A DNA stretch of 64,000 nucleotides. It comes from Thalia democratica. Lineage: Eukaryota. Below the pieces are notes generated by a model that worked only from the letters and a program-made list of their open reading frames with translations, was not told where the DNA came from and did not search any database. The stretch covers positions 49,972,001 through 50,036,000 of the forward strand of contig OZ241832.1 in NCBI GenBank assembly GCA_965202585.1. Reading direction: 5' to 3'. Shown here piece by piece: positions 14,543-45,730 of this stretch (position 1 is its first letter; every line of letters starts with the position of its first letter). Position numbers and translations under genes: made by a program.

Positions 14543-16628
14543 ATTTTAATAGGGTCAGCCTATTTTAAGTCGATGATTAGTTTTCTTAAAAAAGCTCGTG
14601 TTCTCGCAAGCCGCAGTTTATAGATAAAAGTCTTCCATGGGCCGCAGTTCTTAAAGCAATTTTAATAGCCAATATGAAAAACTTTAATGTATCAAAGTAT
14701 GATAAAATAAGTAACAATAGAGCACTAGTAACAATTAACTAACAAGTTCAGAGCAAAATTGTAGATTTTTTACTACAACCAAAAAAGATTATATTTAATA
14801 AGTATGACTTTTGTTATAATACCTGGCTTGCCGCAATTTCCTAACTTTTAGTTAGGGAGTATCCAGCAGAATAACAAATAAATTGGCTATGAAAAGTGTT
14901 TGATCTTCAAGTACAATAGTATTTTTTTTTGACGAAAAGATAAAACCAGCTGATTCCAAATGTGATATTTAAATAAACGACTCTTAAAAACTTATATTAT
15001 TCTGAAAAATGTTTTTCAGGGCCCAGATCCGGGCTAGTCATTTTCACTTCAAGGATCTTTCTCGCAGGTCGTATGTAGCCCATACCAAGTTTATTTCCTC
15101 GTCTTTTGTTTCATAGTAAAATATAAATTGTAGAACTTTTTATAGTTTAAAAAACATTGTAAGTAAAATAGCCAAGTTTTAGCCATTGGAACAGTGTTTC
15201 TTTTCTGGAACATTTTAATTATTTATGTTTTGCTGATTCTAAAATCTTGAAAACTATCTAAATCTAGCTTTGTACTAGTTTAGTTTATAAAATGTTTAGA
15301 TGTTCAAATATATTTAAGCTTAATGTATTTCCTTTTTTTAATTTTCAAAATAAGCTTTTTTTTTGTGAAATTTATTAATTTTTGTACACTATTTAAATTG
15401 TTGCATTACTTAAACCTTTCTATTTGATCTACTAGCTACCTTAGTTAATTTATTTTTTTTATAATAAAATTTTAATACTTGATATAATGAAATGATATTA
15501 AACAAATACTTTAAGTTTAGAACATGAAAGAATTGAAAATGCAAAATTTTATATATCTCTATTAAAAGTTGTTATAGAAGTTGAACCAATCTTATAGTAA
15601 TCTAACATAAGGATACCTCAGTACAAAAGCCTGCCCTTGTCTAATATTATTAAAGAAGAAACTGATAGTATTCCAGTATACATATAAATAATCTAACATA
15701 TATATGTACAATTATTATAGCAAGATAAATCGCCTAAAGTTTAACACTTTTATAAATTTATAAAGTTTATAGTGTAACATATTAATAAACTACTAAAAAG
15801 TAAACAAGTAGCTAATTTATTTTATATATATATATATTAATATGAATTTAAACTACTCTAGAGTTTGCGTACAACAGTTAATTGGCATGGCACTCTAAAA
15901 AATAGAAATAAAAGACTTCTGTTGTTACTAAGTACTTAAAAGTAGACATTAAAACCATCAAAAAATACACAAATTAAGTCTGTTTATTTTAAGTAAACAT
16001 ACCTCCGTCTTTTGAGGCAAACTTATTTGTTTCTACAAACCTGAAAATATTTTATCTAAAAGAATAACGTTTCTGATAAAAAACTTTGAGTTTTATTACA
16101 AAACTTTAAATGTCAGTAAAGTAAATAATTTAAATTATATTTTTATTTCAAATTATTGGCTTCGACTGCGTAAGTTGTCAGGCTTTTTTTTTTGTATTTT
16201 ATTAAATTTATTTTAGATTCATTATGTTCTAGAGTAAATAAGTATTTTGACAACAATCAAACCTTTATTCATAGAATATTTTTTTCGATAAAAAAACTAA
16301 TTCTTTTTGCTTTATTATTTACCGCCATAATAACTTGATTAATAAAAACCTAGTAAAAACGTTATCAGTTTAGTACATGTTTTAAATAAGAAAACTTTTT
16401 AAAATTTATTTGTTAGAAAATTAACTAGCTACAATACTACAATTTACATGAGTTTATTTAATTCTGAAACTATACACTTATCAACCCAAAATACTAGAAA
16501 GTACCTTAAAAAGATAATCAATCTCCTATGTTTATAAAAAAACATTTTAAAGCATATTACAAAAAAAAACAAGAGTTAGAGCATCAATTAGCATAGCTTC
16601 AAAAGTACTGATGACTAAAACGTTTTAT

Positions 16629-19600
16629 CTAGTTTTTGGGAGTATAGTTGTCGGCACATGAGAATCGTTTGCAGCTAAAAAACTTTTCTATGGTCGCTTC
16701 ATCTACGTTCTCTCTATTCTTTTGATGATTTGCTACAAATGCTTGAAGTACTTCAATCAGACGTTTCTTGAGTTCTCCCGATAAAAGTTCTCCTTTAGCA
16801 TATGCCTAAAATTAATATGAAGATAGATTTATAAATTTTATAAAAAAAAATTAACTAATGACATTACTTTGAAATTATCTACCATGTTTAAAAGTATACA
16901 TCGTTACTAACAGCTTTAATTTTTTCATATTCTTCATCATCGTCTAAGAAGAAATTAAGATATTTAATGCACACATCAACTTCAATATTTCCTCCAAGTT
17001 TTCGGTGCAATTCAACTGTATCTTGGCCTCCACTGAATGCGTACTTATTAATCTGTATAAAATTTTTTAAAATCATGTAAATCACTTATATATCAAAGTA
17101 AATAACTAAGAATACTTTTAAATAAGATCCAGTTAGAATATTACGTTAAACTAAAATAAAATGAAAAATAATTTTTTTGAAGTAATACCTTGGTTTTTAT
17201 TTGTTGGGGAGTATCAGTGAGAAATATTCCGCTGTTTTCATCTGAAGCACTCATTTTAGAGACGGCTCCTTGCAATGCCGGAAAAAATACGGAGTGAATC
17301 AACGCAGGCTTTTTGAATCCTAACGTTGGTGCATAATGCCTTGTCAAGCGGAAGTATGGATCCTAAAATAATTGAAAATAACTAATTAAGTAAAGTTTAG
17401 TTTAGAAACTTTGATGTTATGTTAGTTTGTTCTTCGATGATAGTGCTATAGATAAGCTACTATCATATGCATACACATATACTTTGCTAGATGCATTGAG
17501 CTTTTAAGTAAAATGATTTAATGAAACTAATAAAATTAATAAGTTCTAATTTTTAAAAGGTCTTAATTATAAATAATATTACATTTTTGCCCTTTTTAAA
17601 ATAGTTGATAAGACCTAGATAAGTATTTGTAGAAGCAATAACAAATAAAAATTATTTTTGATACTAAATATGTAAAATTAAAATAGACTCAGTTTTCATT
17701 AAGTAAAATTTTTTTAATTAATAGTTTTATAGCGTTAAACTTGTGTAAACATATTTTAAAACTCATCATAAACCGACTGTTTGAGCAATTGAATATAATT
17801 AAAAACTATCAGTTTTTAATATTACCAAATTAAACTTATATAAATAACAAAATGTTTGGACATTACCTGATCAATAGCGCATGGAATGAGGCATTCCACG
17901 TCTCTACATCCGTTAAAAATGTGTGGAAAACTGGAAGAAAATGAAGGGCAAGCTTGCACTGGTGGAAAACTTACTTGTCCTAGAATAAAATTTATTTATT
18001 TTTAATTAGTGATAAGTATTTTCAAAAATAAAAAAAATAAATATATGTAAAACTATACTTTTATATGTATTGTTCTATAATAAGAGTTTAAACTTTTTAA
18101 TTCAACTACTTAAAAATACGTTGTTTATCTGTTTTAGATTGAATTAAAACTTTTAACTAACCAATATTATTATCTCCCTCGAAGCCGAAGCAGCCTTTTA
18201 CTTGATTTAATGTGACAGCCTTTTTAAACTTGATAATATTCTTAAAGAATTCTTTTCTGTAAGCATGAATTATTTTTATTTAAACTTAAATGTTTATGCT
18301 TACTATTAATTTTTATTTTAATTTAAAATTGTTTTTATAAGCGTTTCAAACATGTTTTAATAAATAGATTTCACTATTTATAAACATTTCCTTTTCAAAT
18401 GCAAAAATTAAATAGTTACTTACCCATGTCCCTCAGTTATATATTCAACATCAGTAAAAATAAAAGTTTTGTCCGGGTCAAATCCGCACGCGATAATATC
18501 TTTGGCGTTTGCGTAAGCTAAATCGGTGTAATCATCAAGGTTCTTGCCGTCTTTGAAGAAAAACTTTTTATCATCAGTCATCTGGATGACTAAAGGCACA
18601 TCAAACACTTTCTGAAGCCATCTGGTATAAAGATAACTAGTAAAAACTTGTTCCGAAACTTGCAGTTTTAGTGTGTTAAGTGTAAAGTTTAGTAGTAACA
18701 TAAAAGGCTGAGTATAATTAAAAGAAAACAACTTAATAAAAAGCTTAAACTATAAAAAGTACGTTTTGAAAATATTATTTCTAAACATTAAAAAACACAT
18801 TTAATAATTGTGTATTAATTAGTGTGCAACTAACTGAGTGAACATGAAATGAACCATATGACCAAGATGCATGGCAGTAGATGAAGGTCCACGTCCAGTG
18901 TACAAATAAAAAGGCTTCCCAGCTATGTAGTTCGTTAACACTTGATCCAGTTCTCTTAATGAAAAATTATGATAAATCAATAAGCTTTTTAAAAAATGTT
19001 AAAACTTGCAAACAGAGACACTTATTAGATATTTGTTTTAGTAATATTAGCAATGCAACACAAATTTTCCGTAGATAACTCAATACTTTTATGGTAAGTT
19101 ATGATCAACTACAATTACAGAAAATAGATACATTATTTTTAGAATAATAAAAAAAATATGTTTTTAAAATTTCTATCCTATAATTTTTATACTGATGTTT
19201 TTAAATTATTTTATGTTTGTTAACTAATAATAAAAACTTATGAGAAAAAAATATTTTTCTTCTAAGAAAGGTATGCATTTTCATAATCTTTTTGTCAAGA
19301 ACTTCTTGAAATTTTTGTAACACATCTTCACTAATTCTTTCTGATCCAAACTTAACTGAAAATTATACTTTTTATTTTTATTCATGCTTATAACTATTAA
19401 GGTTTATTAAAAGTTAAGTCCGGTAGATCATTTTTCTAAAGTTTTTAACTTAAGACGTTCCTCTAATATAAGACCTAATTAATGATGATAAAACAGCAAA
19501 ATATCTGGTTAACGAGTAGTAGTTAGACAAAAAGTTTAATGATATCTAGTAAAGTGATTAAATTGTTTTAACTGTTTAGTTTAAAAAGATTTTTCATTAA

Positions 19601-19814
19601 AAATAACTTTATGAAGACTACCAAAATTCTTAAAAAAAAAATTAAAAGAAAAATCAAGATCAAACTTATATAAATGGTTCAGCTTACCAATGAGTTTTTC
19701 ATAATCAATTCCTTTATTGCTTGATGCCTTTACAGACCACGGATCTACAACATCTTCAGTTTCTGAGTTATTCATTGAAGTGTTTTCCATTTTACGATTA
19801 ATTTCTTCTGCCAT
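16629..19814 (-). CDS. WARS1: Cytoplasmic tryptophanyl-tRNA synthetase, copy 1 (420 aa; open frame with motif substitutions). Exons 19814-19688, 19355-19238, 18954-18835, 18621-18424, 18256-18162, 17979-17867, 17362-17189, 17052-16912, 16805-16629
   Basis: The nine GT-AG exons sum to 1263 nt. Eukaryotic TrpRS signatures are present: [26 protein letters not shown] (HIGH), AIDQDPYFR, KMSAS, YAFSGG, GELKK. No N-terminal WHEP domain. Carries [12 protein letters not shown] and QMTDDKK where sister copies have [12 protein letters not shown] and QMTDDEK. Confidence 0.93.
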
Positions 19815-20427
19815 TTTAGCTTTTATGTAATAATTTTCTGAAAATTTTTAGTGAATAGGATTTAGTATAGAACAAATTTAAATTGTAACTAAGTTTTTAA
19901 GATCCATTCTTTAAAATACCTAATTTATTTTTTTCTGTAAAATTTTTTAACATGAAAAATAATATTAATAATTTCTTTTTAATTTAAATTATAATTGACG
20001 TAATTGACAAGCAAAAAATATGTATGTACCCTAAAAGTTAAAGAAATATTAAAATTTTAAAATAGTTTTAAATATAAGATGTTGCAAAAGTCTTTTTTAA
20101 AGAGGTTTGAAAATATTAAATTTTTAACTTAACATATTATAGACTTATAAAAATGATACTTAAATTTCTCATAACCACTTGTTTAGAACCTAAACTGTAC
20201 TTAAAGTTTTTTTAAAACTTTATTTATCCTGAATTTTATCCTAAGCTGTTACTCGTTGCTCTATTACCTACAAATGATATTAAGAATGCTTGCGTGTAAA
20301 ATAAAAAGTTGTAATTTTCTAATTAAATCCAAGAATCGCTTCATTAAAACTATTTAACAGGATTATGTAATTTGATAACTTTTTATATTACTTATTTTTT
20401 CATTGTTAAAGTAAAAGACTAACTTAC

Positions 20428-20628
20428 TTCAGCGTGAGGTTTTTAAATCAATATGTGTCAGAAACTAAGTTAAATAATTTCATACAAGCTATAATACTAA
20501 ATAACATATTTATAAACCACAAGGACTTTTGAGTTAATAAAACAGAGTCATTGAAATCAGCTAAGACTCTAAAATTTTCTCGGTGTACCCTTAATTTTGC
20601 ACAGAAGTTTAAACATATACAAGTTTGC
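20428..20628 (-). other. Candidate non-coding 5'-UTR exon upstream of each TrpRS copy (equivalents near 26.2-26.4, 32.0-32.2, 37.8-38.0 kb and 43617-43818; diverged extra copy 44705-44904)
   Basis: ATATTACAG|G acceptor and GCTGAA|GTAAGT donor. A matching acceptor TTTTCAG| lies 23 nt upstream of the TrpRS ATG (19838-19840). Splice signals persist in the diverged sixth copy. Confidence 0.5.
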
Positions 20629-21528
20629 CTGTAATATATTAAAGGATATGCAAGATATGAAGTATTATAGTCATTTACTTTAAAAATGAAAAACATAGTG
20701 AGATATAAAAAAGGAATCATATTGCTTTATCCATTTAAGAGGTTTAAATGAACCGTTTCTATAAACTAATTAGAAATTTACCTCAAAAATATTTTGGAGA
20801 CGCAACTTTATTTTATAAAGAAAAAAAGATACAACAACATGATAATTTTTTTAGTTGCCAAAAAAGTAAAATATACAAATCCTATTAACATTTGTTAAAG
20901 GTCATTTATGATACAATTAAATAGATAATCTATTACATCTAATTGAAGACTGAAAAACATACAAAGAAAAAAAAAACATTTAAATAATGATATAGTCTTT
21001 GTAAACTATACCTCTCTACTAAAAATTCCATAAATGTTTCCCATAAAACATATGTCATAAACTTTCAACATAATATTTAAATAAAGATGTTTAGAAAAAA
21101 ATCCTAGTTAGGCCTGAGCTATGCAAATAAGTTTTCACTGAACTGAGGAAAACCTTACTTAAATGAAATGAAACAAACTTCCTACAAATATATTTACTTT
21201 TTATATTCTCGTAGGAGAAAAGCCAAAATGTTATTTGAACTGAAATGTGTTCTCAAGCAAACACAAAAAACTAAACACATAATGAATAATTATCATTTTA
21301 TCCAAAAATCTGAAATTAAACGCCTTAATTATGTACTTATTTATTCATAGTTTAAAAAAATAGTTTATCATAAATTTTATACTGTGGGCAAAACTCTAAA
21401 TGAAAGTTGAGGAGGCTTTTATAAGTGCTAAAAAAGCACAGTATTATCCACTCAAGCGTTAAATCATTAATTAGTTTTACATTTCATTTAACTATTGACA
21501 AAAAATTGAGTACAATTCAAAAAGTTTG

Positions 21529-21684
21529 AAGTGGTTTACCGGATCCAAAATATCGAAAACAGCCGAATCAGAGTCTCATTTTGAAATTAGAATTCGGCAG
21601 AATCAGAATTCGAGTTTTAATTTGAAATTTAGGATTTGGCAGAATCCGAATCCGAGTCCAAGTTTTTGATTCTGTAGATCACTA
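21529..21684. mobile_element. ~150-bp MITE-like element in every inter-gene spacer of the array (also 27312-27460, 33123-33271, 38933-39081)
   Basis: Imperfect inverted termini AAGTGGTTTACCGGATC / GATTCTGTAGATCACTA with internal GAATCCGAAT/GGATTCGGC subrepeats. No TSD seen. Confidence 0.55.
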
Positions 21685-22447
21685 CTTAACATATTGCAGA
21701 CTTATAACATTGATATTTAAATTAATCATAATCGCTAGTTTAGAATCTGAACTATACTTAAAGTCTTTTATATTTTATTTTTTCTGAATAAGTTATTTAT
21801 CCTAAGCTCTTACTTCTTGTCCTGTAACCTACAGATGACGATATTGAATGCTAGCTTAAAATAAAAACTTAAACAGAATAAGTAAATAAATAAAAAACTA
21901 AGTATAGTGTCGGTTCTAAACTAGCGATTATGATGAATTAAAGTAAAAATGTTATAGGTTCACAATTGTTAAATTGAATAATCAAATGTTTTAAACATGT
22001 CTCTTAATTACAGATTAGATACATACATAAAACCTTTATACCTTCATTGATATCACTACATATAATTTTGTAAAAAACTGTTTCAAATTTTACAAGTTTA
22101 GAAACTAAAAATAAAAAACTTTTGCAACTTCTCAAAACGACCTATTGTAAACCTTTTAGTAATCGGTTTGTACACTGTTTGGATACAGTTTAACGTCTTG
22201 TCCAGGACTAAGTGGCACAAAATGAATAAATAATAACCAAAGGTGTAAGAAACTACAGACTTACAAAATGATACATAATTATAAATTTATTAATTTTTTT
22301 TTTTTTTTAAATTAAGTTTATTATAAAGTTATACACTACACGAAACTAAAAAAAATGAAAAAACCCAACGAATATTACAAAAAAAAAACAAGAATTGGAG
22401 CATCAAGTAGCATAGCTTCAAAAGTACTGATGACTAAAACGTTTTAT

Positions 22448-25400
22448 CTAGTTTTTGGGAATATAGTTGTCGGCACATGAGAATCGTTTGCAGCTAAAAA
22501 ACTTTTCTATGGTCGCTTCATCTACGTTCTCTCTATTCTTTTGATGATTTGCTACAAATGCTTGAAGTACTTCAATCAGACGTTTCTTGAGTTCTCCCGA
22601 TAAAAGTTCTCCTTTAGCATATGCCTAAAATTAGTATGAAGATACAATTATCAAATTTAAATAAAAGTCACTTTAAAATTAAATAGCAAGTTTAAAAATA
22701 TACAACGTTACTGACAGCTTTAATTTTTTCATATTCTTCATCATCGTCTAAGAAGAAATTAAGATATTTAATGCACACATCAACTGCAATATTTCCTCCA
22801 AGTTTTCGGTGCAATTCAACTGTATCTTGGCCTCCACTGAATGCGTACTTATTAATCTGTGTAAAGTTTTTAAAATTCATGTAAATCACTTATACATCAA
22901 AGTAAATAACTAAAAATACTTTTAAATAAGATCCAGTTAGAATATCACGTTAAACTAAAATAAAATGAAAAATAATTTTTTTGAAAAAATACCTTAGTTT
23001 TTATTTGTTGGGGCGTATCAGTGAGAAATATTCCGCTGTTTTCATCTGAAGCACTCATCTTAGAGACGGCTCCTTGCAATGCCGGAAAAAACACGGAGTG
23101 AATCAACGCAGGCTTTTTGAATCCTAACGTTGGTGCATAATGCCTTGCCAAGCGGAAGTATGGATCCTATAATAATTGAAAATAATTAATTAAGTAAAGT
23201 TTAGTTTAGAAACTTTGATGTTATGTTAGTTTGTTCTTCGATTATAGCGCTATGGATCATATGCATACACATATACTTTGCTAGATGCATTGAGCTTTTA
23301 AGGAAAAGGATCTGATTTCACTAATAAAATAAATAAGTTTAAACTTTTAAAAGGCTTTAATTTAAAATACTATTATATTTTTGCCCTTTTTAAAATAGTT
23401 GATAAGATCTAGAAAAGTATTTGTAGAAGCAATAACAAATTAATTTTTTTATGATACTAAATATGTAAAATTAAAATCATACACAGTTTTCATTAAGTAC
23501 ACTTTTTTTCATTAATAGTTTTATAGCGTTAAACTTGGGTAAACATATTTCAAAACTCATCGTAAAACGACTGTTTAAGCAATTGAATGTAAATTAAAAC
23601 TATCAGTTTGTATTATTATTAAATTGAACTAGTATAAATAACAAAATATTTGGACATTACCTGATCGATAGCGCATGGAATGAGGCATTCCACGTCTCTA
23701 CATCCGTTAAAAATGTGTGGAAAACTGGAAGAAAATGAAGGACAAGCTTGTACTGGTGGAAAACTTACTTGTCCTAGAATAAAATTTATTTATTTTTAAT
23801 TAGTGATAAGTATATTTTCGAAAATTAAATAAACAAACATATGTAAAACTATACTTTTATATGTATTGTTCTATAATAAGAGTTTAAAATTTTTAATTCA
23901 ACTACTTAAAAATACGTTGTTTATCTGTTTTAGATTGAATTTAAATTTTTAACTAACCAATATTATTATCTCCTTCGAAGCCGAAGCAGCCTTTAACTTG
24001 ATTTAATGTGACAGCTTTTTTAAACTTGATAATATTCTTAAAGAATTCTTTTCTGTAAGCATGAATTATTTTTATTTAAACTTAAATGTTTATGCTTACT
24101 ATTAACTTTTATTTTAATTTAAAATTGTTTTTATAAGCGTTTCAAACATGTTTTAATAAATAGATTTCACTTTTTATAAACGTTTCTGTTTTAAATGCAA
24201 AAATTAAATAGCTACTTACCCATGTCCCTCAGTTATATATTCAACATCAGTAAAAATAAATGTTTTGTCCGGGTCGAATCCGCAAGCAATAATATCTTTG
24301 GCGTTTTCGTAAGCTAAATCGGTGTAATCATCAAGGTTCTTGCCGTCTTTGAAGAAAAACTTTTCATCATCAGTCATCTGGATGACTAAAGCCACATCAA
24401 ACACTTTCTGAAGCCATCTGGTATAAAAATAACTAGTAAAAACTTGTTCCGAAACTTGCAGTTTTAGTGTGTTAAGTGTAAAATTTAGTAGTAACATAAA
24501 TATCTGAGTATAATTAAAAGCTTAAACTATAAAAAGTAATTTTTGAAAATATTCTTTCTAAACATTAAAAAACACATCTAATAATTGTGTATTAATAACT
24601 GTGCCACTAACTGAGTGAACATGAAAGGAACCATATGACCAAGATGCATGGCAGTAGATGAAGGTCCACGTCCAGTGTACAAATAAAAAGGCTTCCCAGC
24701 TATGTAGTTCGTCAACACTTGATCCAATTCTCTTAATGAAAAATTATGATAAATCAATAAGCTTTTTAAAAGATGTCAAAACTTGCAAACAGAGACACTT
24801 ATTAGATATTTGTTAGTAATATTAGCAATGCAAGACAGATTTTCCGTAGATAACTCAATTACTTTTATGGTAATTTATGGTAGTCCAACTACAACTACAG
24901 AAAATAGATACATTATTTTTAGAATAATTAAAAAAAAAGATGTTTTTGAAACTTCTATTTGCATTAATTTTTATACTGATGTTTTTAAATTATTTTGTTT
25001 ATGTTAACTAATAATAAAAACCTATGAGAAAAAAATATTTTTCTTCTAAGAAAGGTATGCATTTTCATATTCTTTTTGTCAAGAACTTCTTGAAATTTTT
25101 GTAACACATCTTCACTGATTCTTTCTGATCCAAACTTAACTGCAAATTATACTTGTTATTTTTATTCATGCTTATAACTATTAAGGTTTATTAAAAGTTA
25201 AGTACGGTAGATCATTTTTCTAAAGTTTTTAACTTAAGACGTTCCTATAATATAAGACCTAATTAATGATGATAAAAAAGCAAAAAATCTGGTTAACGAG
25301 TAGTAGTTAGACAAAAAGTTTAGTGATATCTAGTAAAGTGATTAAATTGTTTTAACTGTTTAGTTTAAAAAGATTTTTCATTAAAAATAACTTTATGAAG

Positions 25401-25601
25401 ACTACCAAAATTCTTAAAAAAAAAAAATTGAAAAGAAAAATCAAGATCAAACTTTTATAAATGGTTCAGCTTACCAATGAGTTTTTCATAATCAATTCCT
25501 TTATTGCTTGATGCCTTTACAGACCACGGATCTACAACATCTTCATTTTCTGAGTTATTTATTGAAGTGTTTTCCATTTTACGAGTAACTTCTTCTGCCA
25601 T
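22448..25601 (-). CDS. WARS1: Tryptophanyl-tRNA synthetase, copy 2 (apparently intact, 9 exons)
   Basis: All nine exons are in frame with GT-AG borders. [28 protein letters not shown] and SGELKK are intact. It is the only copy with canonical ENAKDI. Private changes: DVAL, RLARH, GNIAV. Confidence 0.93.
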
Positions 25602-28226
25602 TTTAGCTTTTATGTAATAGTTTTCTGAAAATTTTTAGTGAATAGGGTTTAGTAAAGAAAAAATTTAAATTGTAACTAAGTTTTTAAGATCCATTCCTTA
25701 AAATACTTAATCTATTTTTTTTCTGTAAAATTTCTCAACATGAAAAGTAATATTAATAAGTTTTTTATTAACTTAAATTATAATTGACGTAATTGACAAG
25801 CAAAAAATAGGTATGTACCCTAAAAGTTAAGGAAATATTAAAATTTTTAATATAAGATGTTGCAAAAGTCTTTTTTTTTTCAAAGAGGTTTGAAAATATT
25901 ATATTTGTAACTTAAAATATTATAGACTTATAAAAATGATACTTAAATTCATCATAACCACTAGTTTAGAACATAAACTGTACTTAAAGTTTTTTTAAAA
26001 CTTTATTTATCCTGAATTTTATCCTAAGCTGTTACTCGTTGCTCTGTTACCTTGAAATGACTTTTAGAATGCTTGCATGTAAAATAAAAAGTTGTAATTT
26101 TCTAATTAGTTCCAATAATCGCTTCATTAAAACTATTTAACAGGATTAGGTAATTTGATACCTTTTTATATTATTTATTTTTCATTGCAAAGTAAAAGAC
26201 TAACTTACTTCAGCGTGAAGTTTTTTATGTGTCAGAAACTAAGTTAAATAATTTCATACAAGCTATAATACTAAATAATATATTTATAAACCACAAGGAC
26301 TTTTGAGTTAATAAAATAGAGTCATTGAAATCAGCTAAGACTCTAAAATTTTTACGGTGTATCCTTAACTTTGCACAGAAGTTTAAACAAATACAAGTTT
26401 GCCTGTAATATATCAAATGATATGCAAGATATGAAGTAAGTTAGTCTTTTATTTTAAAAATGAAAAAATTAGTTAGATATAAAAAGGAATCATATTGCTT
26501 AATCTAGTTAAGTGGTTTAAATGAACCGTTTCTATAAACTAATTAGAAATTTACCTCAAAAATATTATGGAGACGCAACTTTAATTTAAAAAGTTAAAAA
26601 GACACAACAAAATGACAATTTTTTTTAGTTGCAAAAAAAGTAAAATATACAAAACCTATTAATATTTGTTAAAGGTCATTTTATGACACAATCAAATAAA
26701 TAATCAATAACATCTAAATGGAGACTGAAAACCATATTAAGAAAAAAAAAACTTTAAATAAATTATATAGGCTTTGTAAACTATACCTCTCTACTATAAA
26801 TTCCATAAAATTTTGCCATGAAATAGAGGTCATAAACTTTCAAGGTAATCATTAAATAAAGAAGCTTAGAAAAAAATCCTAGTTAGGCCTGAGCTATACA
26901 AATAAGTTTTCACTGAACTGAGGTGACCTGAGGAAAACCGTACTAAAATGAAATAAAACAAACTTCTTACAAGTATACTTATTTTTCATATTCACGTAGG
27001 AAAAAAGCCAAAATGTGATTTGAAATGAAATAGGTTCAAAAGCAAACACAAAAAACTAAACACATGATGAATAACTATAACTTTATCCAAAAAGCTAAAA
27101 TAAAACGCCTTAATTATGTACTTATTTATTTTATAGTCAAACAAAAATTGTTTATCATAAATTTTATACTGTGTGCAAAACTCTAAATGAAAGTTGAAGA
27201 GGCGTTTATAAGTGTTAAAAAGCAGTTTTATCCACTCAAGAATGAAATCATTAATTATTTTTACATTTCATATAACTTTTGACAAAAATTTAGTACAATT
27301 CAAAAAGTTTGAAGTGGTTTACCGGATCCAAAACCTCGGAAAGGGCCGAATCAGAGTCTCATTTTGAAATTAGGATTCGGCAGAATCCGAATTCGAGTTT
27401 TATTTTGAAATTATGATTCGGCCGGATCCGAATTAAAGTTTTTGATTCTGTAGATCACTACTTAACATATTGCAGACTTATAACATTGATACTTAAATTA
27501 ATCATAATCGCTAGTTTAGAACTTGAACTATACTTAAAGTTTGTTATATTTTATTTTTTTTGAATAAGTTATTTATCCTAAGCTCTTACTTCTTTTCTTG
27601 TAACCTACAGATGGCGATTTTGAATGCTACCTTAGAATAAAAACTTAAACAGAATAAGTAAATTAAGAAAAAAATTAAGTATAGTTTCGGTTCTAAACTA
27701 GCGATTATGATGAATTAAAGTAAAAATATTATAAGTTCACAATATGTTAAGTTGAACAATCAAATGTGTTAAACATGTCTCTTAATTATAGATTAGATAC
27801 ATTTATAAAAAATTTATACTTGATTGGTATCATTACTTATAATTTTGTAAAAAATTGTTTCACATATTACAAGTTTAGAAACTAAAAATAAAAGACTTTT
27901 ACAACTTTTCAAAACGACCTAGTGTAAACCTTTTAGTTATCGGTTCGTACACTGTTTGGATACAGTTTAACGTCTTGTCCAGGACTAAGTGGCACAAAAT
28001 GAACAAATAATAGCCATAGGTGTAGGAAACTATAGATTTACAAAATGATATATAATTATAAATTTAATAATAAAACTTTTTTTGGTAAAAATTAAGTTTA
28101 TTATAAATTATACACTTCACGAAACTAAACAAACTGAAAAAGCCCAACGCATATTACAAAAAAAAAACAAGAATTGGAGCATCAATTAGCATAGCTTCAA
28201 AAGTACTGATGACTAAAAAGTTTTGT

Positions 28227-34037: not shown

Positions 34038-37000
34038 CTAGTTTTTGGGAATATAGTTGTCGGCACATGAGAATCGTTTGCAGCTAAAAAACTTTTCTAT
34101 GGTCGCTTCATCTACGTTCTCTCTATTCTTTTGATGATTTGCTACAAATGCTTGAAGTACTTCAATCAGACGTTTCTTGAGTTCTTCCGATAAAAGTTCT
34201 CCTTTAGCATATGCCTAAAATTAATATGAAGATAAAATTATCAAATTTAAATAAAAGTTACTTTAAAATTTAATACCAAGTTTGAAAATATATAACGTTA
34301 CTAACAGCTTTAATTTTTTCATATTCTTCATCATCGTCTAAGAAGAAATTAAGATATTTAATGCACACATCAACTTCAATATTTCCTCCAAGTTTTCGGT
34401 GCAATTCAACTGTATCTTGGCCTCCACTGAATGCGTACTTACTAATCTGTATAAAATTTTTAAAAATCATGTAAATCACTTATATATCAAAGTAAATAAC
34501 TAAGAATATTTTTAAATAAGATCCAATTAGATTATTAAGTTAAACTAAAATAAAATGAAAGATAATTTTTTTGAAGTAATACCTTGGTTTTTATTTGTTG
34601 GGGCGTATCAGTGAGAAATATTCCGCTGTTTTCATCTGAAGCACTCATCTTAGAGACGGCTCCTTGCAATGCCGGAAAAAATACGGAGTGAATCAACGCA
34701 GGCTTTTTGAATCCTAACGTTGGTGCATAATGCCTTGTCAAGCGGAAGTATGGATCCTATAACAATTGTAAATATTTAATTAAGTACAGTTTAATTTAGA
34801 AACTTTAATTTCATGTTAGTTTTTTCTTTGACAATAGCTTTATGGATAAAGTATTTTCATGTACATACACATATACTTTGCAAGAAGCCTTGAGCTTTTA
34901 AGGAAAATAATCTGATTTAACTAATAAAATAAGTTCTAATTTTTAAAAGGCGCTAACTAAAAATACTACTACATTTTTGCCCTTTTAAAAATAGTTGATA
35001 AGATCTAGAAATGTATTTGTAGAAGCAATAACAAATTAAAACTATTTTTGATACTAAATATGTAAAATCAAAATCATACTCAGTTTTCATTAAGTACAAT
35101 TTTTTTCATTAATAGTTTTATAGCGTTAAATTTGTGTAAACATATTTCAAAACTCATCGTAAACCGACTGTTTAAGCAATTGAATGTAAATTAAAACTAT
35201 CAGTTTGTATTATTATTAAATTAAACTAGTATAAATAACAAAGTATTTGGACATTACCTGATCGATAGCGCATGGAATGAGGCATTCCACGTCTCTACAT
35301 CCGTTAAAAATGTGTGGAAAACTGGAAGAAAATGAAGGGCAAGCTTGTACTGGTGGAAAGCTTACTTGTCCTAGAATAAAATTTATATACTTTTATTTAG
35401 TGATAAGTATTTATTCCTAAATTAAATAAATATATGTAAAACTATACTTTTATATGTATTGTTTTATAATAAGAATTTAAACTTTATAATTCAACTACTT
35501 GAAAATACGTTGTTTATCTGTTTTAAATTGAATTAAAACTTTTAACTAACCAATATTATTATCTCCTTCGAAGCCGAAACAGCCTTTTACTTGATTTAGT
35601 GTGACAGCTTTTTTAAACTTGATAATGTTCTTGAAGAATTCTTTTCTGTAAACATGAAATATTTTTTATAAACTTAAACGCTTATGCTTACTATTAGTTT
35701 ATATTTTAATTTAACATTATTATTATAAGCGTTTCAACCATGTTTTAATAAATAGATTTCACTTTTTATAAAAATTTCTGAGTTCAAATTAAAAAAATTG
35801 AATATCCACTTACCCATGTCCCTCAGTTATATATTCAACATCAGTGAAAATAAAAGTTTTGTCCGGGTCAAATCCGCAAGCGATAATATCTTTGGCGTTT
35901 GCGTAAGCTAAATCGGTGTAATCATCAAGGTTCTTGCCGTCTTTGAAGAAAAACTTTTCATCGTCAGTCATCTGTATGACTAACGGCACATCAAACACTT
36001 TCTGAAGCCATCTGGTATAAAGATAACTAGTAAAAACTTGTTCCGAAACTTGCAGTTTTAGTGTGTTAGGTGTAAAGTTTAGTAGTAACATAAAAGGCTG
36101 AGTATAATTAAAAGAAAACAACTTAATAAAAAGCTTAAACTATAAAAAGTACGTTTTAAAATTACTATTTCTAAACATTACAAACACATTAAAATATTGT
36201 GTATTAATAACTGTGCCACTAACTGAGTGAACATGAAAGGAACCATATGACCAAGATGCATGGCAGTAGATGAAGGTCCACGTCCAGTGTACAAATAAAA
36301 CGGCTTCCCAGCTATGTAGTTCGTCAACACTTGATCCAATTCTCTGGATGGAAAATTATGATAAATCAATAAGCTTTTTAAATGATGTCAAAACTTGCAA
36401 ACAGAGACACTTATTAGATATTTGTTTTAGTAATATTAGCAATGCAACACAGATTTTCCGTAGATAACTCAATACTTTTATGGTAAGTTATGATCAACTA
36501 CAATTACGGAAAACAGATACATTATTTTTAGAATAATTAAAAAAAAGACGTTTTTAAAATTTCTATTTGCATTAATTTTTATACTGATGTTTTTGAATTA
36601 TTTTGTATTTGTTAACTAATAATAAAAACCTATGAGAAAAAATATTTTTCTTCTAAGAAAGGTATGCATTTTCATATTCCTTTTGTCAAGAACTTCTTGA
36701 AATTTTTGTAACACATCTTCACTAATTCTTTCTGATCCAAACTTAACTGAAAATTATACTTTTTATATTTATCCATGCTTATAACTATTAAGGTTTATTA
36801 AAAGTTAAGTCCGGTAGATCATTTTTCTAAAGTTTTTAACTTAAGACGTTCCTATAATATAAGACCTAATTAATGATGATAAAACAGCAAAATATCTGGT
36901 TAACAAGGAGTAGTTAGACATAAAGTTTAGTGATATCTAGTAAAGTGATTAAATTGTTTTAACTGTTTAGTTTAGAAAGATTTTTCATTAAAAATAACTT

Positions 37001-37206
37001 TATGAAGACTACCAAAATTCTTAAAAAAAAAATTGAAAAGAAAAATCAAGATCAAACTTATATAAATGGTTTAGCTAACCAATGAGTTTTTCATAATCAA
37101 TTCCTTTATTGCTTGATGCCTTTACAGACCATGGATCTACAACATCTTCAGTTTCTGAGTTATTTATTGAAGTGTTTTCCATTTTACGAGTAATTTCTTC
37201 TGCCAT
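34038..37206 (-). pseudogene. WARS1: Tryptophanyl-tRNA synthetase, copy 4; near-identical to copy 3 with the same frameshift
   Basis: Offset exactly 5811 bp from copy 3 at both start and stop. 6-A run at 36637-36642, same SEELKK and ISKY. Only scattered SNPs differ (e.g. exon 1 donor GTTAGC vs GTAAGC). Confidence 0.7.
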
Positions 37207-39846
37207 TTTAGCTTTTATGTAATAGTTTTCTGAAAATTTTTAGAGAATAGGATTTAGTATAGAAAAAATCTAAATTGTAACTAAGTTTTTAAGATCCATT
37301 CCTTACAATAATTACTAGTTAAGTTAAATAATTACGAGTAATAGTTAATTTTTTAGAAAAGAGAAATTAATATTTTTTTTAACCTAAATTATTGACATAA
37401 TTGACAAGTAAAAAAATATGTATATACCCTAAAAGTTAAGGAAATATTAAAATTTTAAAATAGTTTTAAATATAAGAAGTTGCAAAAGTCTTTTTTTTTT
37501 CAAAGAGGTTTGAAAATATTATATTTTTAACTTAACATATTATAGACTTATAAAAATGGTACTTAAATTCCTCATAACCACTATTTAGAACCTAAACTGT
37601 ACTTAAAGTTTTTTTAAAACTTTATTTATCCTGAATCTTATCCTAAGCTGTTACTCGTTGCTCTATTACCTTGGAATTATTTTTAGAATGCTTGCGTGTA
37701 AAACAAAAGTTGTAATTTTCTAATTAGTTCCAAGAATTGCTTCATTAAAACCATTTAACAGGATTAGGTAATTTGATACCTTTTTATATTACTTATTTTT
37801 CATTGTTAAAGTAAAAGACTAACTTACTTCAGCGTGAAGTTTTTAAACCAATATGTGTCAGAAACTAAGTTAAATAATTTCTTACAAGCTATAATACTAA
37901 ATAATATATTTATAAACCACAAGGACTTTTGAGTTAATAAAATAGAGTCATTGAAATCAGCTAAGACTCTAAAGTTTTTACGGTGTATCCTTAATATTGC
38001 ACAGAAGTTTAAACAAATACAAGTTTTCCTGTAATATATCAAAGGATATGCAAGATATGAAGTAAGTTAGTCTTTTATTTTAAAAATGAAAAAATTAGTG
38101 AGATATAAAAAGGAATCATATTGCTTAATCTAGTTAAAAGGTTTAAATGAGCTGTTTCTATAAACTAATTAGAAATTTACCTCAAAAATATTATGGAGAC
38201 GCAACTTTATTTTAAAAAGTTAAAAAGACACAACAAAATGACAATTTTTTTTGATTGCAAAAAAAGTAAAATAAACAAATCCTATTAATATTTGTTAAAG
38301 GTCATTTTATGACACAATCAAATAAATAATCAATAACATCTAAGACTGAAAACCATATTAAGAAAAAAAAAACTTTAAATAAATTATATAGGCTTTGTAA
38401 ACTATACCTCTCTACTATAAATTCCATAAAATTTTGCCATGAAATAGAGGTCATAAACTTTCAAGGTAATCATTAAATAAAGAAGCTTAGAAAAAAATCC
38501 TAGTTAGGCCTGAGCTATGCAAATAAGTTTTCACTGAACTGAGGTGACCTGAGGAAAACCGTACTAAAATGAAATAAAACAAACTTCTTACAAGTATACT
38601 TATTTTTCATATTCACGTAGGAAAAAAGCCAAAATGTTATTTGAAATGAAATAGGTTCAAAAGCAAACACAAAAAACTAAACACATGATGAATAACTATA
38701 ACTTTATCCAAAAAGCTAAAATAAAACGCCTTAATTATGTACTTATTTATTTTATAGTCAAACAAAAATTGTTTATCATAAATTTTATACTGTGTGCAAA
38801 ACTCTAAATGAAAGTTGAAGAGGCGTTTATAAGTGTTAAAAAGCAGTTTTATCCACTCAAGAGTGAAATCATTAATTATTTTTACATTTCATATAACTTT
38901 TGACAAAAATTTAGTACAATTCAAAAAGTTTGAAGTGGTTTACCGGATCCAAAACCTCGGAAAGGGCCGAATCAGAGTCTCATTTTGAAATTAGGATTCG
39001 GCAGAATCCGAATTCGAGTTTTATTTTGAAATTATGATTCGGCCGGATCCGAATCAAAGTTTTTGATTCTGTAGATCACTACTTAACATATTGCAGACTT
39101 ATAACATTGATACTTAAATTAATCATAATCGCTAGTTTAGAACTTGAACTATACTTAAAGTTTGTTATATTTTATTTTTTTTGAATAAGTTATTTATCCT
39201 AAGCTCTTACTTCTTTTCTTGTAACCTACAGATGGCGATTTTGAATGCTAGCTTAGAATAAAAACTTAAACAGAATAAGTAAATTAAGAAAAAAATTAAG
39301 TATAGTTTCGGTTCTAAACTAGCGATTATGATGAATTAAAGTAAAAATATTATAAGTTCACAATATGTTAAGTTGAACAATCAAATGTGTTAAACATGTC
39401 TCTTAATTATAGATTAGATACATTTATAAAAACTTTATACTTGATTGGTATCATTACTTATAATTTTGTAAAAAATTGTTTCACATATTACAAGTTAAGA
39501 AACTAAAAATAAAAGACTTTTACAACTTTTCAAAACGACCTAGTGTAAACCTTTTAGTTATCGGTTCGTACACTGTTTGGATACAGTTTAACGTCTTGTC
39601 CAGGACTAAGTGGCACAAAATGAACAAATAATAGCCATAGGTGTAGGAAACTATAGATTTACAAAATGATACATAATTATAAATTTAATAATAAAACTTT
39701 TTTTGGTAAAAATTAAGTTTATTATAAATTATACACTTCACGAAACTAAACAAACTGAAAAAGCCCAACGCATATTACAAAAAAAAACAAGAATTGGAGC
39801 ATCAATTAGCATAGCTTCAAAAGTACTGATGACTAAAAAGTTTTGT

Positions 39847-42800
39847 CTAGTTTTTGGGAATATAGTTGTCGGCACATGAGAATCGTTTGCAGCTAAAAAA
39901 CTTTTCTATGGTCGCTTCATCTACGTTCTCTCTATTCTTTTGATGATTTGCTACAAATGCTTGAAGTACTTCAATCAGACGTTTCTTGAGTTCTCCCGAT
40001 AAAAGTTCTCCTTTAGCATATGCCTAAAATTAATATGAAGATAAAATTATCAAATTTAAATAAAAGTTACTTTAAAATTTAATACCAAGTTTGAAAATAT
40101 ATAACGTTACTAACAGCTTTAATTTTTTCATATTCTTCATCATCGTCTAAGAAGAAATTAAGATATTTAATGCACACATCAACTTCAATATTTCCTCCAA
40201 GTTTTCGGTGCAATTCAACTGTATCTTGGCCTCCACTGAATGCGTACTTATTAATCTGTATAAAATTTTTAAAAATCATGTAAATCACTTATATATCAAA
40301 GTAAATAACTAAGAATACTTTTAAATAAGATCAAATTAGATTATTAAGTTAAACTAAAATAAAATAAAAAATAATTTTTTTGAAAAAATACCTTAGTTTT
40401 TATTTGTTGGGGCGTATCAGTGAGAAATATTCCGCTGTTTTCATCTGAAGCACTCATCTTAGAGACGGCTCCTTGCAATGCCGGAAAAAACACGGAGTGA
40501 ATCAACGCAGGCTTTTTGAATCCTAACGTTGGTGCATAATGTCTTGTCAAGCGGAAGTATGGATCCTATAATAATTGAAAATAACTAATTAAGTAAAGTT
40601 TAATTTAGAAACTTTAATGTTATGTTAGTTTGTTCTTCGATTATAGCGCTATGGATCATATGCATACACATATACTTTGCAAGAAGCATTGAGCTTTTAA
40701 GGAAAATAATGTGATTTAACTAATAAAATAAGTTCTAATTTTTAAAAGGCTCTAACTAAAAATACTACTACATTTTTGCCCTTTTTAAAATAGTTGATAA
40801 GATCTAGAAAAGTATTTGTAGAAGCAATAACAAATTATTTTTTTTTTTGATACTAAATATGTAAAATAAAATCGTACTCAGTTTTCATTAAATACAATAT
40901 TTTTCATTAATAGTTTTATAGCGTTAAATTTGGGTAAACATATTTCAAAACTCATCATAAACCGAATGTTTAAGCAATTGAATGTAAATTAAAACTATCA
41001 GTTTGTATTATTATTAAATTGAACTAGTATAAATAACAAAATGCTTTGACATTACCTGATCGATAGCGCATGGAATGAGACATTCCACGTCTCTACATCC
41101 GTTAAAAATGTGTGGAAAACTGGAAGAAAATGAAGGGCAAGCTTGCACTGGTGGAAAACTTACTTGTCCTAGAATAAAATTTATTTATTTTTATTTAGTG
41201 ATAAATTTTTATTCCAAAATTAAATAAATATATGTAAAACTATACTTTTATATGTATTGTTCTATAATAAGAATTTGAACTTTTTAATTCAACTACTTGA
41301 AAATACGTTGTTTATCTGTTTTAGATTGAATTAAAACTTTTAATTAACCAATATTATTATCTCCTTCGAAGCCGAAACAGCCTTTTACTTGATTTAATGT
41401 AACAGCCTTTTTAAACTTGATAATATTCTTGAAGAATTCTTTTCTGTGAGCATAAATTATTTTATATAAACTTAAATGTTTATGCTTACTGTTAGTTTTT
41501 ATTTTAAATTAACATTACTTTTATAAGCGTTTCAAACGTGTTTTAATAATTAGATTTCACTTTTTATAAAATTTTTTGTTTCAAATTAAAAAAATTGAAT
41601 ATCCATTACCCATGTCCCTCAGTTATATATTCAACATCAGTGAAAATAAAAGTTTTGTCCGGGTCAAATCCGCAAGCGATAATATCTTTGGCGTTTGCGT
41701 AAGCTAAATCGGTGTAATCATCAAGGTTCTTGCCGTCCTTGAAGAAAAATTTTTCATCATCAGTCATCTGTATGACTAACGGCACATCAAACACTTTCTG
41801 AAGCCATCTGGTATAAAAATAGCTAGTAAAAACTTGTTCCGAAAATTGCAGTTTTAGTGTGTTAAGTGTAAAGTTTAGTAGTAACAAAAATATCTGAGTA
41901 TAATTAAAAGAAAACAACTTAATAAAAAGCTTAAACTATAAAAAGTAATTTTTGAAAATATTATTTCTAAACATTAAAAACACATTAAATTATTGTGTAT
42001 TAATTACTGTGCCACTAACTGAGTGAACATGAAAGGAACCATATGACCAAGATGCATAGCAGTAGATGAAGGTCCACGTCCAGTGTACAAATAAAACGGC
42101 TTCCCAGCTATGTAGTTCATTAACACTTGATCCAATTCTCTGGATGGAAAATTATGATAAATCAATAAGCTTTTTATAAAGTCAAAACTTGCACATAGAT
42201 ACTTATTAGATATTTCATTTAATAATATTAGCAACGCAACACAGATTTTCCGTAGATAACTCTATACTTTTATAGAAGTTTATGATAGTTCAACTACAAA
42301 TATAGAAAATAGATACATTATTTTTAGAATAATTAAAAAAAAAGACGTTTTTAAAATTTCTATTTGCATTAATTTTTATACTGATGTTTTTAAACTAATT
42401 TGTATTTGTTAACTAATAATAAAAACCTATGAGAAAAAAATATTTTTCTTCTAAGAAAGGTATGCATTTTCATATTCTTTTCGTCTAGAACTTCTTGAAA
42501 TTTTTCTAACACATCTTCACTAATTCTTTCTGATCCAAACTTAACTGCAAATTATACTTTTTATTTTTATCCATGCTTATACTTATTAAGGTTTATTAAA
42601 AGTTAAGTCCCGTAGATCATTTTTCTAAAGTTTTTAACTTAAGACGTTCCTATAATATAAGACCTAATTAATGATGATAAAACAGCAAAATATCTGGTTA
42701 ACGAGTAGTAATTAGACAGAAAGTTTAATGATATCTAGTAAAGTGATTAAATTGTTTTAACTGTTTACAAAGATTTTTTATTAAAAATAACTTTATGAAG

Positions 42801-42999
42801 ACTACCAAAATTCTTAAAAATAAAATTGAAAAGAAAAATCAAGATCAAACTTATATAAATGGTTCAGCTTACCAATGAGTTTTTCATAATCAATTCCTTT
42901 ATTGCTTGATGCCTTTACAGACCACGGATCTACAACATCTTCAGTTTCTGAGTTATTTATTGAAGTGTTTTCCATTTTACGAGTAATTTCTTCTGCCAT
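39847..42999 (-). CDS. WARS1: Tryptophanyl-tRNA synthetase, copy 5 (apparently intact, 9 exons)
   Basis: All exons are in frame, with the 7-A run at 42434-42440. [42 protein letters not shown] and SGELKK are all intact. Confidence 0.93.
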
Positions 43000-43329
43000 T
43001 TTTGCTTTTATGTAATAGTTTTCTGAAAATTTTTAATGAACAGGAATTAGTATAGAAAAAATCTAAATTGTAACTAAGTTTTTAAGAACCATTCCCTAAA
43101 ATACTTATTTTAATCTTTCTGTAAAATTTTTTAACATGAAAAATAATATTAATAACTTTTTTTTTAACTTAAATTATAGTTCACATAAATTACAAGCAAA
43201 AAATATGTATGTACCCTAAAAGTTAAGGAAATATTAAAATTTTAAATCAGTTTTAACTATAAGAAGTTGCAAAAGTCTTTTTTTTTTCAAAGAGGTTTGA
43301 AAATATTATATTTGTAACTTAAAATATTA

Positions 43330-45730
43330 TAGACTTATAAAAATGATACTTAAATTCCTCATAACCACTAATATAGAACCTAAACTGTACTTAAAGTTAA
43401 AAAAAAATTTTTTATCCTGAATTTTATCCTAAGCTGTTACTCGTTGCTCTCTTACCTTGAAATGACTTTTAGAATGCTTGCATGTAAAATAAAAAGTTGT
43501 AATTTTCTAATTAGTTCCAAAAATCGCTTCATTAAAACCATTTAACAGGATTAGGTAATTTGATACTTTTTTATATCTCACTTAGTTTTCATTATTAAAG
43601 TAAAAGACTAACTTACTTCAGCAAGAGGTTTTTAAATCAATATGTGTCAGAAACTAAGTTAAATAATTTCTTACAAGCTATAATACTAAATAATATATTT
43701 ATAAACCACAAGGACTTTTGAGTTAATAAAATAAAAGTCATTGAAATCAGCTAAGACTCTAAAGTTTTTACGGTGTACCCTTAATTTTGCACAGAAGTTT
43801 AAACAAATACAAGTTTGCCTGTAATATATTAAAGGATATGCAAGATATGAAGTATTATAGTCATTTACTTTAAAAATGAAAAAAATAGTGAGATATAAAA
43901 AGGAATCATATTACTTAATCCACTTAAGTGGTTTAAATGAACAGTTTCTATAAATTAATTAGAAATTTACCTCAAAAATATTTTGGAGACACAACTTTAT
44001 TTTAGAAAGTCAGCATGACATTTTTTTTAGTTGCAAAAAAGTAAACTATACAAACCTTATTAGTATTTGTTAAAGGTAATTTATTGATTAAATTAAATAA
44101 ATAATAAATAACATCTAAATGGAGACTGAAAACCATATAAAGAAAAAAAAATACAATAAATAATTACCTGGTCTTTGTAAACTATACCTCTCTACTTAAA
44201 ATTCCATAAATTTTTCCCATGAAATATATGTCATAAATTTTCAACATAATCTTAATAGAGATGCTTAAAAAAAAATCCTTGTTAGGCCTGAGCTGTGCAA
44301 ATAAGTTTTCACTGAATTTAGCTGACCTGAAGAAAACCTTACTAAAATAAAATGAAACAATTTACCTAGAAGCATATTTACTTTTTTAATTCTCGTAGGA
44401 TAAAAGCCAAAATGTTATTTGAACTGAACAACGGGTTTTAAATTCAACATAACCACTAATTTAGAACCTAAACTATACTTGAAGTTTCTTAAAAATTTAT
44501 TTATTCTGAATTTTATCTCAAGCTGTTACTCCTAGCCCTCTTACCAACAGATTATTTTATTGAATGATTTTATGTAAAATAAAAAGTTAGATTTTTCTAA
44601 TTATTTCCAAGAATTGCTTCATTAAAATCATTTAACAGGATTAAGTAATTTGATTCCTTTCCATTTCTCACTTATTTTATTTTCAAAATAAAATAATAAC
44701 GTACTTCAGCGTGAGTTTTTAAATTCAGTAGTTTTAGACATTATCTAAAATAATTTCTTATAAGCAGAAATATTAAATAAATTATAAATAAATAATAAAG
44801 ACTTTTGAATTAATAAAGTAAGAGTCATTTAAGTTAGCTAAGATTTAAAATTTATTCAATATAGCCATAATTTTGCACAAAAGCTTAAAAAAATACAAGT
44901 ATACCTGTAATATATTAAAGAATAAACAAATTATTTTTTTATAGTTGCAGAAGTCTGTTATTTTTAATTTCAATAATTTTAAATTTTGCAGAAGAAGTAC
45001 AGAAAACTATAAGTAATGATATCAATGGAGGTATTATGGTTTTATATTTGTGCCTAATTTATTATTTCAGAGAAAGGTTTAAAACAATATTAAATACTTA
45101 AAATAACATTTTGTAGACTTGTAATATTGGTATTTAAATTATATAAAAAGGAATCATACTGCTCAATCAAGTTAAGTGGTTTAAATGAACCGTTTCTATA
45201 AACTAATTAGAAATTTACCTCAAAAATATTTTGGATACGCAACTTTATTTTACAAGAAAAAAAAAAACACAATAACATGATAATTTTTTAAATCAGGAAA
45301 AAAGTAAAATATATAAATACTAGAAATATTTGATAAAGGTCATTTATGACACCATTAAATAAATAACATCTAAATGGAGACTGAAAACCATATTAAAAAA
45401 AAAGAAAGATACTTTAAATAATTAAATAGTCTTTGTAAGCTATACCTCTCTACTAAAAATTCTATAAATGTTTACCATAAAACATATGTCATAAACTTTC
45501 AACATAATCTTTAAATAAAGATGTTTAGAAAAAAAATCCTAGTTAGGCCTGAGCTGAGCTATGCTAATAAGTTTTAACTGAGCTGAGATGACCTGAGGAA
45601 AACCTTACTTAAATGAAATGAAACAAACTTAATACTAGTATATTTATTTTTTATATTCTCGTAGGAGAAAAGCCAAAATGTTATTTGAATTGAAATAAGT
45701 TCACAGACAAACAAAAAAAAAACTAAACTG
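43330..45730 (-). repeat. Older tandem duplication of the ~1.1-1.3-kb TrpRS upstream module (43330-44430 and 44440-45730)
   Basis: Two successive diverged copies of the same landmarks: TAGAACCTAAACT.TACTT, AAGCTGTTACTC, the UTR-like exon, AAGGAATCATA, GTTAGGCCTGAGCT and TTCTCGTAGGA. Confidence 0.8.

Follow-up and report, generated by a model that had tools for sequence, protein, structure and literature searches.

Two inverted arrays of predicted cytoplasmic-type tryptophanyl-tRNA synthetase genes in Thalia democratica

The genome of Thalia democratica contains 13 tryptophanyl-tRNA synthetase (TrpRS) genes in two inverted tandem arrays of five and eight copies, together with one pseudogene and one parent-like gene, C9. 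This is a real, selected and still-turning-over expansion from a C9-like gene, in which most copies are probably working enzymes giving extra or specially regulated charging of tryptophan (Trp). The first array, array A, lies in the window, by which we mean the whole 64,000-nucleotide stretch analyzed (contig OZ241832.1, positions 49,972,001 to 50,036,000 of the forward strand); feature positions are given in window coordinates.

Array A consists of five direct repeats arranged head-to-tail in ~5.8 kb units (spacing 5.78-5.82 kb), where a preliminary description of this DNA had placed it. Homology of the units spans 16549..45739 (-), including spacer-like remnants upstream of copy 5, and each unit holds a TrpRS gene of the 420-aa cytoplasmic type on the minus strand, with nine exons and GT-AG at all borders. 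The copies are A1 (16629..19814), A2 (22448..25601), A3 (28227..31395), A4 (34038..37206) and A5 (39847..42999), all (-). As the preliminary description had noted, the copies diverge: A3 and A4 are near-identical and the introns of the remaining window copies are 7-9% apart. Its "five complete" genes hold as five units of nine exons each, but A3 and A4 are frameshifted. The spacer at 37207..39846 (-), one of four between the genes, is homologous to the spacers of array B, and a dispersed repeat lies within it at ~38222-39082. No tRNA genes and no Rfam families were found in the whole window, so no tRNA-Trp or RNA gene was co-amplified, and no convincing second gene was found in the array spacers or flanks.

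By their sequence, the array genes encode a eukaryotic cytoplasmic-type TrpRS, a class Ic aminoacyl-tRNA synthetase (aaRS). All five exons tested (3, 4, 7, 8 and 9) had their best profile match in tryptophan--tRNA ligase (trpS) models and not in TyrRS, in a test run on single exons, which cannot reach whole-protein cut-offs. The best PDB matches of array exons were human cytoplasmic TrpRS structures (WARS1; PDB 1r6t, 2quh, 1o5t), with which the arrays share the class Ic fold family and the HxGH, KMSAS and AIDQ motifs. HLGH, an HxGH (HIGH-type) signature of the Rossmann fold, is present in 13/13 copies and C9 and maps to human residues 170-173; exon 7 aligns with human residues 314-371 with KMSAS kept (E=2e-24), and AIDQ closes exon 6 in every copy. 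The human Trp pocket (Y159, Q194, E199, Q284 and Q313) aligns with the array proteins (PMC2275098), and its residues are kept in A2, A5, B1-B8, C9 and the exon sequences of A3/A4, the exception being A1 with Lys at the E199 equivalent. These conserved catalytic motifs favor the array copies as putative working enzymes. In a full-length homologue search, array TrpRS was ~61-65% identical to bilaterian TrpRS. There are only ~22 residues ahead of the conserved VDPW motif, leaving no room for a WHEP domain, which is missing from the array proteins; in the homologue list, PF00458 occurs in vertebrate entries and some unnamed ones and is absent from named invertebrate entries.

A genome-wide exon-4 protein search accounted for 16/16 candidates as members of the two arrays (5 + 8), C9 and a pseudogene. 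This search was needed because the array exons are short: a whole-genome PF00579 profile scan missed both arrays and found the mitochondrial TrpRS, a single intronless gene, and other loci. Array B is inverted, lies 1.17 Mb from array A on the same chromosome-scale contig and has eight intact copies. The frame is open over all exons in A1, A2, A5 and B1-B8 (420-421 aa). A dead copy at 46.9 Mb, 3 Mb away, has stops, frameshifts and lost splice sites. The single parent-like C9 gene is on another contig, with 10 exons, 440 aa and a Lys-rich C-terminal tail. The preliminary description had proposed a lineage-specific expansion. The expansion is confirmed and, at 13 array copies besides C9 and the pseudogene, exceeds what was proposed; its lineage-specificity is supported only insofar as the array copies are much nearer to each other and to C9 than to any other TrpRS retrieved.

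Copy number was taken from the summed depth of independent read-derived contigs in two samples, a rough proxy. Flank unitigs had a depth of 55-82, and summed array depth was ~1018 in sample X1 and ~1119 (vs 83) in sample X3, or ~14.7x and ~13.5x single-copy, respectively. A B-type-matching unitig had a depth of 570 (~8x), and an A3/A4-specific unitig 144.7 (~2x). An assembly artefact, with haplotypes or collapsed reads laid out falsely as tandem copies, would fit the near-identity of A3 and A4; this reading is largely refuted and exceedingly improbable. Read depth is ~13-15x that of the flank and not that of one copy, single positions are covered by as many as six different unitigs, and introns differ by 7-17% between copies, far above allelic variation. 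Haplotype mis-assembly is excluded by unitig depth, the A3/A4 unitig at 2x and the intron divergence.

In the tree, C9 falls outside, the pseudogene is basal, and A and B each form a clade. The arrays can be aligned with C9 through introns, intron 9 is precisely lost in the arrays, and the proteins are ~91% identical. A retrocopy origin is excluded, since 8/9 introns are at the same positions and some can still be aligned with C9, as is a viral or giant-virus origin, given the kept introns and the protein identity. The array genes thus go back to DNA-level duplication of a conventional gene resembling the 10-exon C9 copy, and the array lineage is without the last intron and the Lys-rich C-terminal tail of that gene. 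The upstream flank at 44688..48310 (-), 85% identical to that of array B, marks an inverted segmental duplication of array and flank. Segmental duplication and unequal crossing-over have enlarged the arrays in a process that is still ongoing, with single copies born and dying, as seen in the dead copy, in A3/A4 with their frameshift and in A1 with its mutated active site. The family has the features of birth-and-death evolution: same-orientation units with homologous spacers, very young neighbor duplicates (A3=A4; B4-B5=B6-B7) and a dead member.

Three of the five window copies (A1, A3 and A4) bear lesions that are likely disabling. Copy A1 has three near-invariant residues substituted (R82K, P117H and E140K), and its exon 2 ends in A, not G. 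The E140K codon (18567-18569) is at the position equivalent to human E199, the Trp-binding Glu. A1 looks like the sole candidate non-charging paralogue, and its changes match early decay equally well. In the assembled sequence, exon 2 of both A3 and A4 has T6 in place of T7 (30826-30831 and 36637-36642, respectively), a 1-bp deletion that breaks the frame. The frame would be recovered if exon 3 were spliced at the second AG in its CAGAG acceptor, a speculative rescue that changes a near-invariant His-Arg, kept in 20 and 21 of 22 homologues, respectively, to Leu-Ile. A pattern scan for the T6/T7 site in JGI metagenomes gave 0 matches. Copy A2 carries P131A (codon 24390-24392) on a near-invariant Pro, copy A5 has 0 substitutions among the conserved residues checked, and both, with intact 420-aa frames, look sound by sequence.

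Purifying selection on the array coding sequence is strong. Maximum-likelihood omega is 0.11 for the arrays (A 0.14; B 0.11), and not near 1 as the neutral decay raised in the preliminary description would have it. Pairwise dN/dS is 0.05-0.18, with 0.37 for the two youngest pairs, and introns have diverged by 0.08 within arrays and by 0.16 between them, in agreement with dS. The pseudogene serves as the family's example of decay. Terminal branches have a raised N:S ratio (28:30, omega ~0.25), and with the three lesioned window copies this suggests that part of the family may be redundant. The arrays could also have grown near-neutrally, by unequal crossing-over at a repeat-rich locus with no adaptive benefit, purifying selection persisting because a defective subunit, once expressed, would poison the obligate TrpRS dimers that it forms with good ones. 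TrpRS dimerization is established (PMC2275098), and the dispersed repeat in the spacers, the very recent duplicates, the lesions in A1 and A3/A4, the dead copy and the raised terminal N:S all fit. We consider such growth unlikely, because 13 copies persist at dS 0.05-0.17 and omega ~0.11, array B is intact in 8/8 copies, the second sample has a similar copy number, and a dominant-negative cost would be escaped more easily by silencing or losing copies than by keeping them over the long term.

Array-type transcripts are spliced in nature: marine metatranscriptome contigs of this type are joined exactly at the E7/E8 border. Two contigs have 4 and 7 mismatches from A1 vs 28 and 20 from C9, and the contigs match 0 assembled copies exactly.

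For a selected expansion, most array copies would be working enzymes, and the tail-less isoform may add extra or specially regulated Trp-charging capacity. The analysis turned up no cause for an unusually high demand for Trp charging. The paralogues might instead have been neofunctionalized outside bulk translation, in Trp buffering, in withstanding Trp analogues or inhibitors of TrpRS, or in signaling or immunity as in mammalian WARS1. Consistent with this, the array N-terminus departs from C9 (12 of the first 18 residues), the Lys-rich tail is missing, the arrays are derived at 8 polarizable sites vs 3 for C9, and A1 has lost a Trp ligand; in C. elegans, depleting WARS-1 is reported to be harmful when Trp is in excess (PMC10995160). 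A new function is nevertheless quite unlikely: catalytic motifs and pocket residues are kept in 10/11 open-frame copies (A1 excepted), which points to canonical chemistry; the WHEP domain is absent, no signal-peptide-like N-terminus was seen in the array proteins when the sequence was read by eye, and no signal of positive selection was detected in the array copies. It is possible, though not likely, that the 13 array genes encode a distinct selected tail-less isoform whose high dosage is adaptive in this marine animal, e.g. under exposure to high or toxic Trp or Trp analogues, or in a specialized cell type.

Cytoplasmic aaRSs in animals are textbook single-copy housekeeping genes, and a literature search found no published report of an animal TrpRS array. 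Unlike human WARS1, the array proteins are without WHEP and number 13 copies vs one, and they also lack the Lys-rich tail of C9. Bacterial auxiliary TrpRS II, an inhibitor-resistant or stress-induced enzyme (PDB 1yi8 and 2a4m, distant matches), is likewise an extra paralogue beside a housekeeping TrpRS, but it is bacterial-type, strongly diverged and present as one extra copy, whereas the arrays comprise many near-identical eukaryotic copies; the bacterial-type matches in this genome pertain to its mitochondrial enzyme and not to the arrays. Copy-number variation on Leishmania donovani chromosome 23 takes in TrpRS and so, like the arrays, raises a eukaryotic TrpRS in copy number, but it is ~3.5-fold, strain-variable and within a multi-gene amplified segment, not a dedicated array of diverged, selected copies (PMC6262978). 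Gene models from other eukaryotes that fuse two TrpRS (P0001, P0269, P0277 and P0340), which are gene predictions, suggest adjacent tandem duplicates, with two copies only vs 13 here, and the second half of P0001 has a degenerate HIGH motif.

A 13-copy TrpRS family with an intact parent gene, kept under purifying selection, is a natural experiment that bears on aaRS dosage, the role of an appended Lys-rich tail and the tolerance of obligate dimers to duplication. For biochemistry, ready contrasts are at hand in the C9 parent protein, a tail-less consensus protein and A1 as a natural E199K-equivalent mutant. If the arrays are an adaptive tandem family, this would be the first animal case known to us of a cytoplasmic aaRS amplified in this way, and if the dosage is adaptive, it would point to an unrecognized pressure, linked to tryptophan, on a planktonic marine animal.

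A direct-repeat search of the window, which is AT-rich (22-30% G+C) and has zero N, revealed five in-register direct repeats from ~16.5 kb to 45.7 kb with start-to-start distances of 5.78-5.82 kb. One unit of this array (array A) carries a 9-exon gene on the minus strand with canonical GT-AG introns. Exons from one unit were projected onto all five, giving minus-strand spans from ATG to stop of 19814-16629 (A1), 25601-22448 (A2), 31395-28227 (A3), 37206-34038 (A4) and 42999-39847 (A5). A1, A2 and A5 each yield an uninterrupted 420-aa translation. The preliminary description had counted five complete tryptophanyl-tRNA synthetase (TrpRS) units; the fivefold repeat structure stands, but completeness does not, as the near-identical A3 and A4 have six T rather than seven in an exon 2 T-run (30826-30831 and 36637-36642, respectively), resulting in a frameshift. 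Elsewhere in the window, a long tandem array of ~70 copies of a 22-bp unit, each unit ending in the splice-acceptor-like TTTTCACAGG, occupies 4726-6266, and a 47-bp unit is then repeated six times (6420-6725).

All five exons tested (3, 4, 7, 8 and 9) had tryptophan--tRNA ligase models as the top match. Exon 4 aligns with human TrpRS residues 182-241, and the whole length of exon 7 matches residues 314-371 of the human cytoplasmic enzyme, KMSAS included (E=2e-24). HLGH, AIDQ and KMSAS are found in all copies of array A and of a second array, B. The array proteins have no space for a WHEP domain N-terminal to the conserved VDPW motif, and in this they differ from vertebrate WARS1. Judged by sequence, they look like cytoplasmic TrpRS in every test, except for A1 (one pocket residue) and A3 and A4 (frame).

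The 802 Mb assembly was searched with the exon 4 protein and all 16 candidates were scored, resolving into TrpRS loci that include both arrays, a single gene on contig C9 and a pseudogene. Array B lies inverted on the plus strand at C8:48782515-48822344 (48.78-48.82 Mb), 1.17 Mb from the window (C8:49972001-50036000), and comprises eight copies with a period of ~5.25 kb, all with GT-AG introns across 9/9 exons and open frames of 420-421 aa. The pseudogene (C8:46915554-46919582, 46.9 Mb), a dead copy of the array lineage, has lost its start codon and has several stops, several 1-bp frameshifting indels and three mutated splice sites. A separate canonical WARS locus, the existence of which had been left to be checked, was found at C9:9809838-9817638 (9.81 Mb) as a single parent-like gene of 10 exons with larger introns, encoding 440 aa with a Lys-rich C-terminal tail that is missing from the array genes. 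An intronless, bacterial-type locus of 351 aa (C5:40.5 Mb; 40.527 Mb, L001:1429-2484), the sole one of its kind detected, has human mitochondrial TrpRS as its best PDB match and is presumably the mitochondrial enzyme.

Copy number was checked with Logan read-derived contigs of two samples, X1 and X3, mapped over the left boundary of array A. In X1, unitigs with depths of 55-82 span the unique flank (14.7-16.5 kb) without a mismatch, and summed depth over A1 (at least 90% likeness) averages ~1018, or ~14.7x flank; in X3, flank (~0.5% different from the window) and A1 region have depths of ~83 and ~1119 (~13.5x). Summed unitig depth, here taken from contigs, is not itself copy number and is rough. 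Single positions are covered by up to six distinct unitigs. One unitig of depth 570 (~8x) has the B-type base at 16984/40187 and by base and depth appears to stand for the eight B copies; another has the A3/A4-only indel pattern (144.7, ~2x), and one is specific to A5 (42). These depths, though rough, fit closely both the assembled total of 13 copies and the reality of A3 and A4 as two copies, and an assembly artefact is very improbable. Introns are as deep as exons in X1-X3 and their contigs contain no intron-skipping joints, so these samples behave as DNA runs.

Synonymous divergence (dS) is 0.07-0.09 within array A, 0.05-0.09 within array B, 0.11-0.17 between them and 0.70-0.87 between the arrays and the C9 gene, with intron divergences of 0.081, 0.085 and 0.162 for the first three. 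In a maximum likelihood tree rooted on C9, the pseudogene splits first, and A and B are each recovered as a clade (100% and 74% support, respectively). The alignment of array units to the C9 locus starts 26 nt before the ATG and runs across several introns, with intron 9 precisely missing from the arrays; they thus arose by DNA duplication, and retroposition is ruled out. At sites polarised by 22 distant TrpRS, the outgroup residue survives in C9 at 8 and in the arrays at 3, and the identity of C9 to bilaterian enzymes is 2-3 points higher, which marks it as the conservative, parent-like gene. Upstream of array A, 3.6 kb of sequence (44688-48310) shares 85% identity, inverted, with the region upstream of array B, so an array or proto-array was duplicated with its flank as one segment. 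Near-identical pairs show that unequal crossing-over has recently duplicated a single unit (A3/A4) and a block of two (B4-B5 to B6-B7). The A and B spacers are homologous, including a dispersed repeat, which, sitting in every array spacer, may have promoted such exchange. The spacer repeat is one of two dispersed repeat families in the window (13900-14550 and 38222-39082), each with >1000 first-look genome candidates at 70-80% identity.

Nonsynonymous divergence (dN) among array copies is just 0.003-0.017. Pairwise dN/dS is 0.05-0.18, with 0.37 in the two youngest pairs, which have very few differing sites. Codon models gave omega of 0.14 for array A, 0.11 for array B and 0.11 for all 13 copies, the last far from the value near 1 of neutral decay. 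With intact catalytic motifs in 13 copies, this argues that most of the genes make a working TrpRS and that selection acts against loss of function. The same constraint could persist in a near-neutral expansion, since bad subunits would harm a dimeric enzyme, but we consider this unlikely.

Copy-specific changes in array A (28 non-synonymous, 30 synonymous) give omega ~0.25. Compared with 22 distant homologues, A1 carries R82K, P117H and E140K, and A2 carries P131A, all at invariant or nearly invariant positions. A1 E140 corresponds in the exon 4 alignment to human E199, which hydrogen-bonds the tryptophan alpha-amino group (PMC2275098). The last exon 2 base of A1 (19238) is A for G, ahead of a weak GTTTTT donor, and this may also weaken A1 splicing. 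Given the A1 substitutions and the A3/A4 frameshift, A5 and probably A2 alone look fully sound in the window. Array B is much cleaner, with conserved-position changes only in B5 (P96H) and B4 (Y364S). Overall, the pattern is one of a family under selection whose members turn over by birth and death.

The organism is represented in marine metagenomes. Two marine metatranscriptomes each contain one contig with intron 7 exactly removed (17189 joined to 17052), differing from A1 at 4/243 and 7/204 positions; C9 would give 28 and 20, so both are array-type. Another contig has a C9-type N-terminus with exon 1 spliced to exon 2. Marine samples thus contain spliced transcripts of both gene types. The reading we think probable is that the arrays encode mostly working TrpRS and that, most simply, the tail-less isoform would give extra or separately regulated tryptophan-charging capacity; a new role outside translation is less likely even than near-neutral expansion.

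A literature search found no report of an animal TrpRS tandem family. The nearest items are a multi-gene copy-number variation in Leishmania that includes TrpRS (roughly 3.5-fold) and gene models from other eukaryotes in which two copies are fused. These models, four predicted proteins of ~780-825 aa (P0001, P0269, P0277 and P0340; P0269 and P0277 from plants), hint at adjacent duplicates elsewhere: P0001 has two TrpRS bodies in tandem, the second with a degenerate HIGH motif, and the other three, by their length, appear also to be double. Tandem expansion is itself an ordinary process; what is unusual here is its target, TrpRS, and the strength of the constraint.
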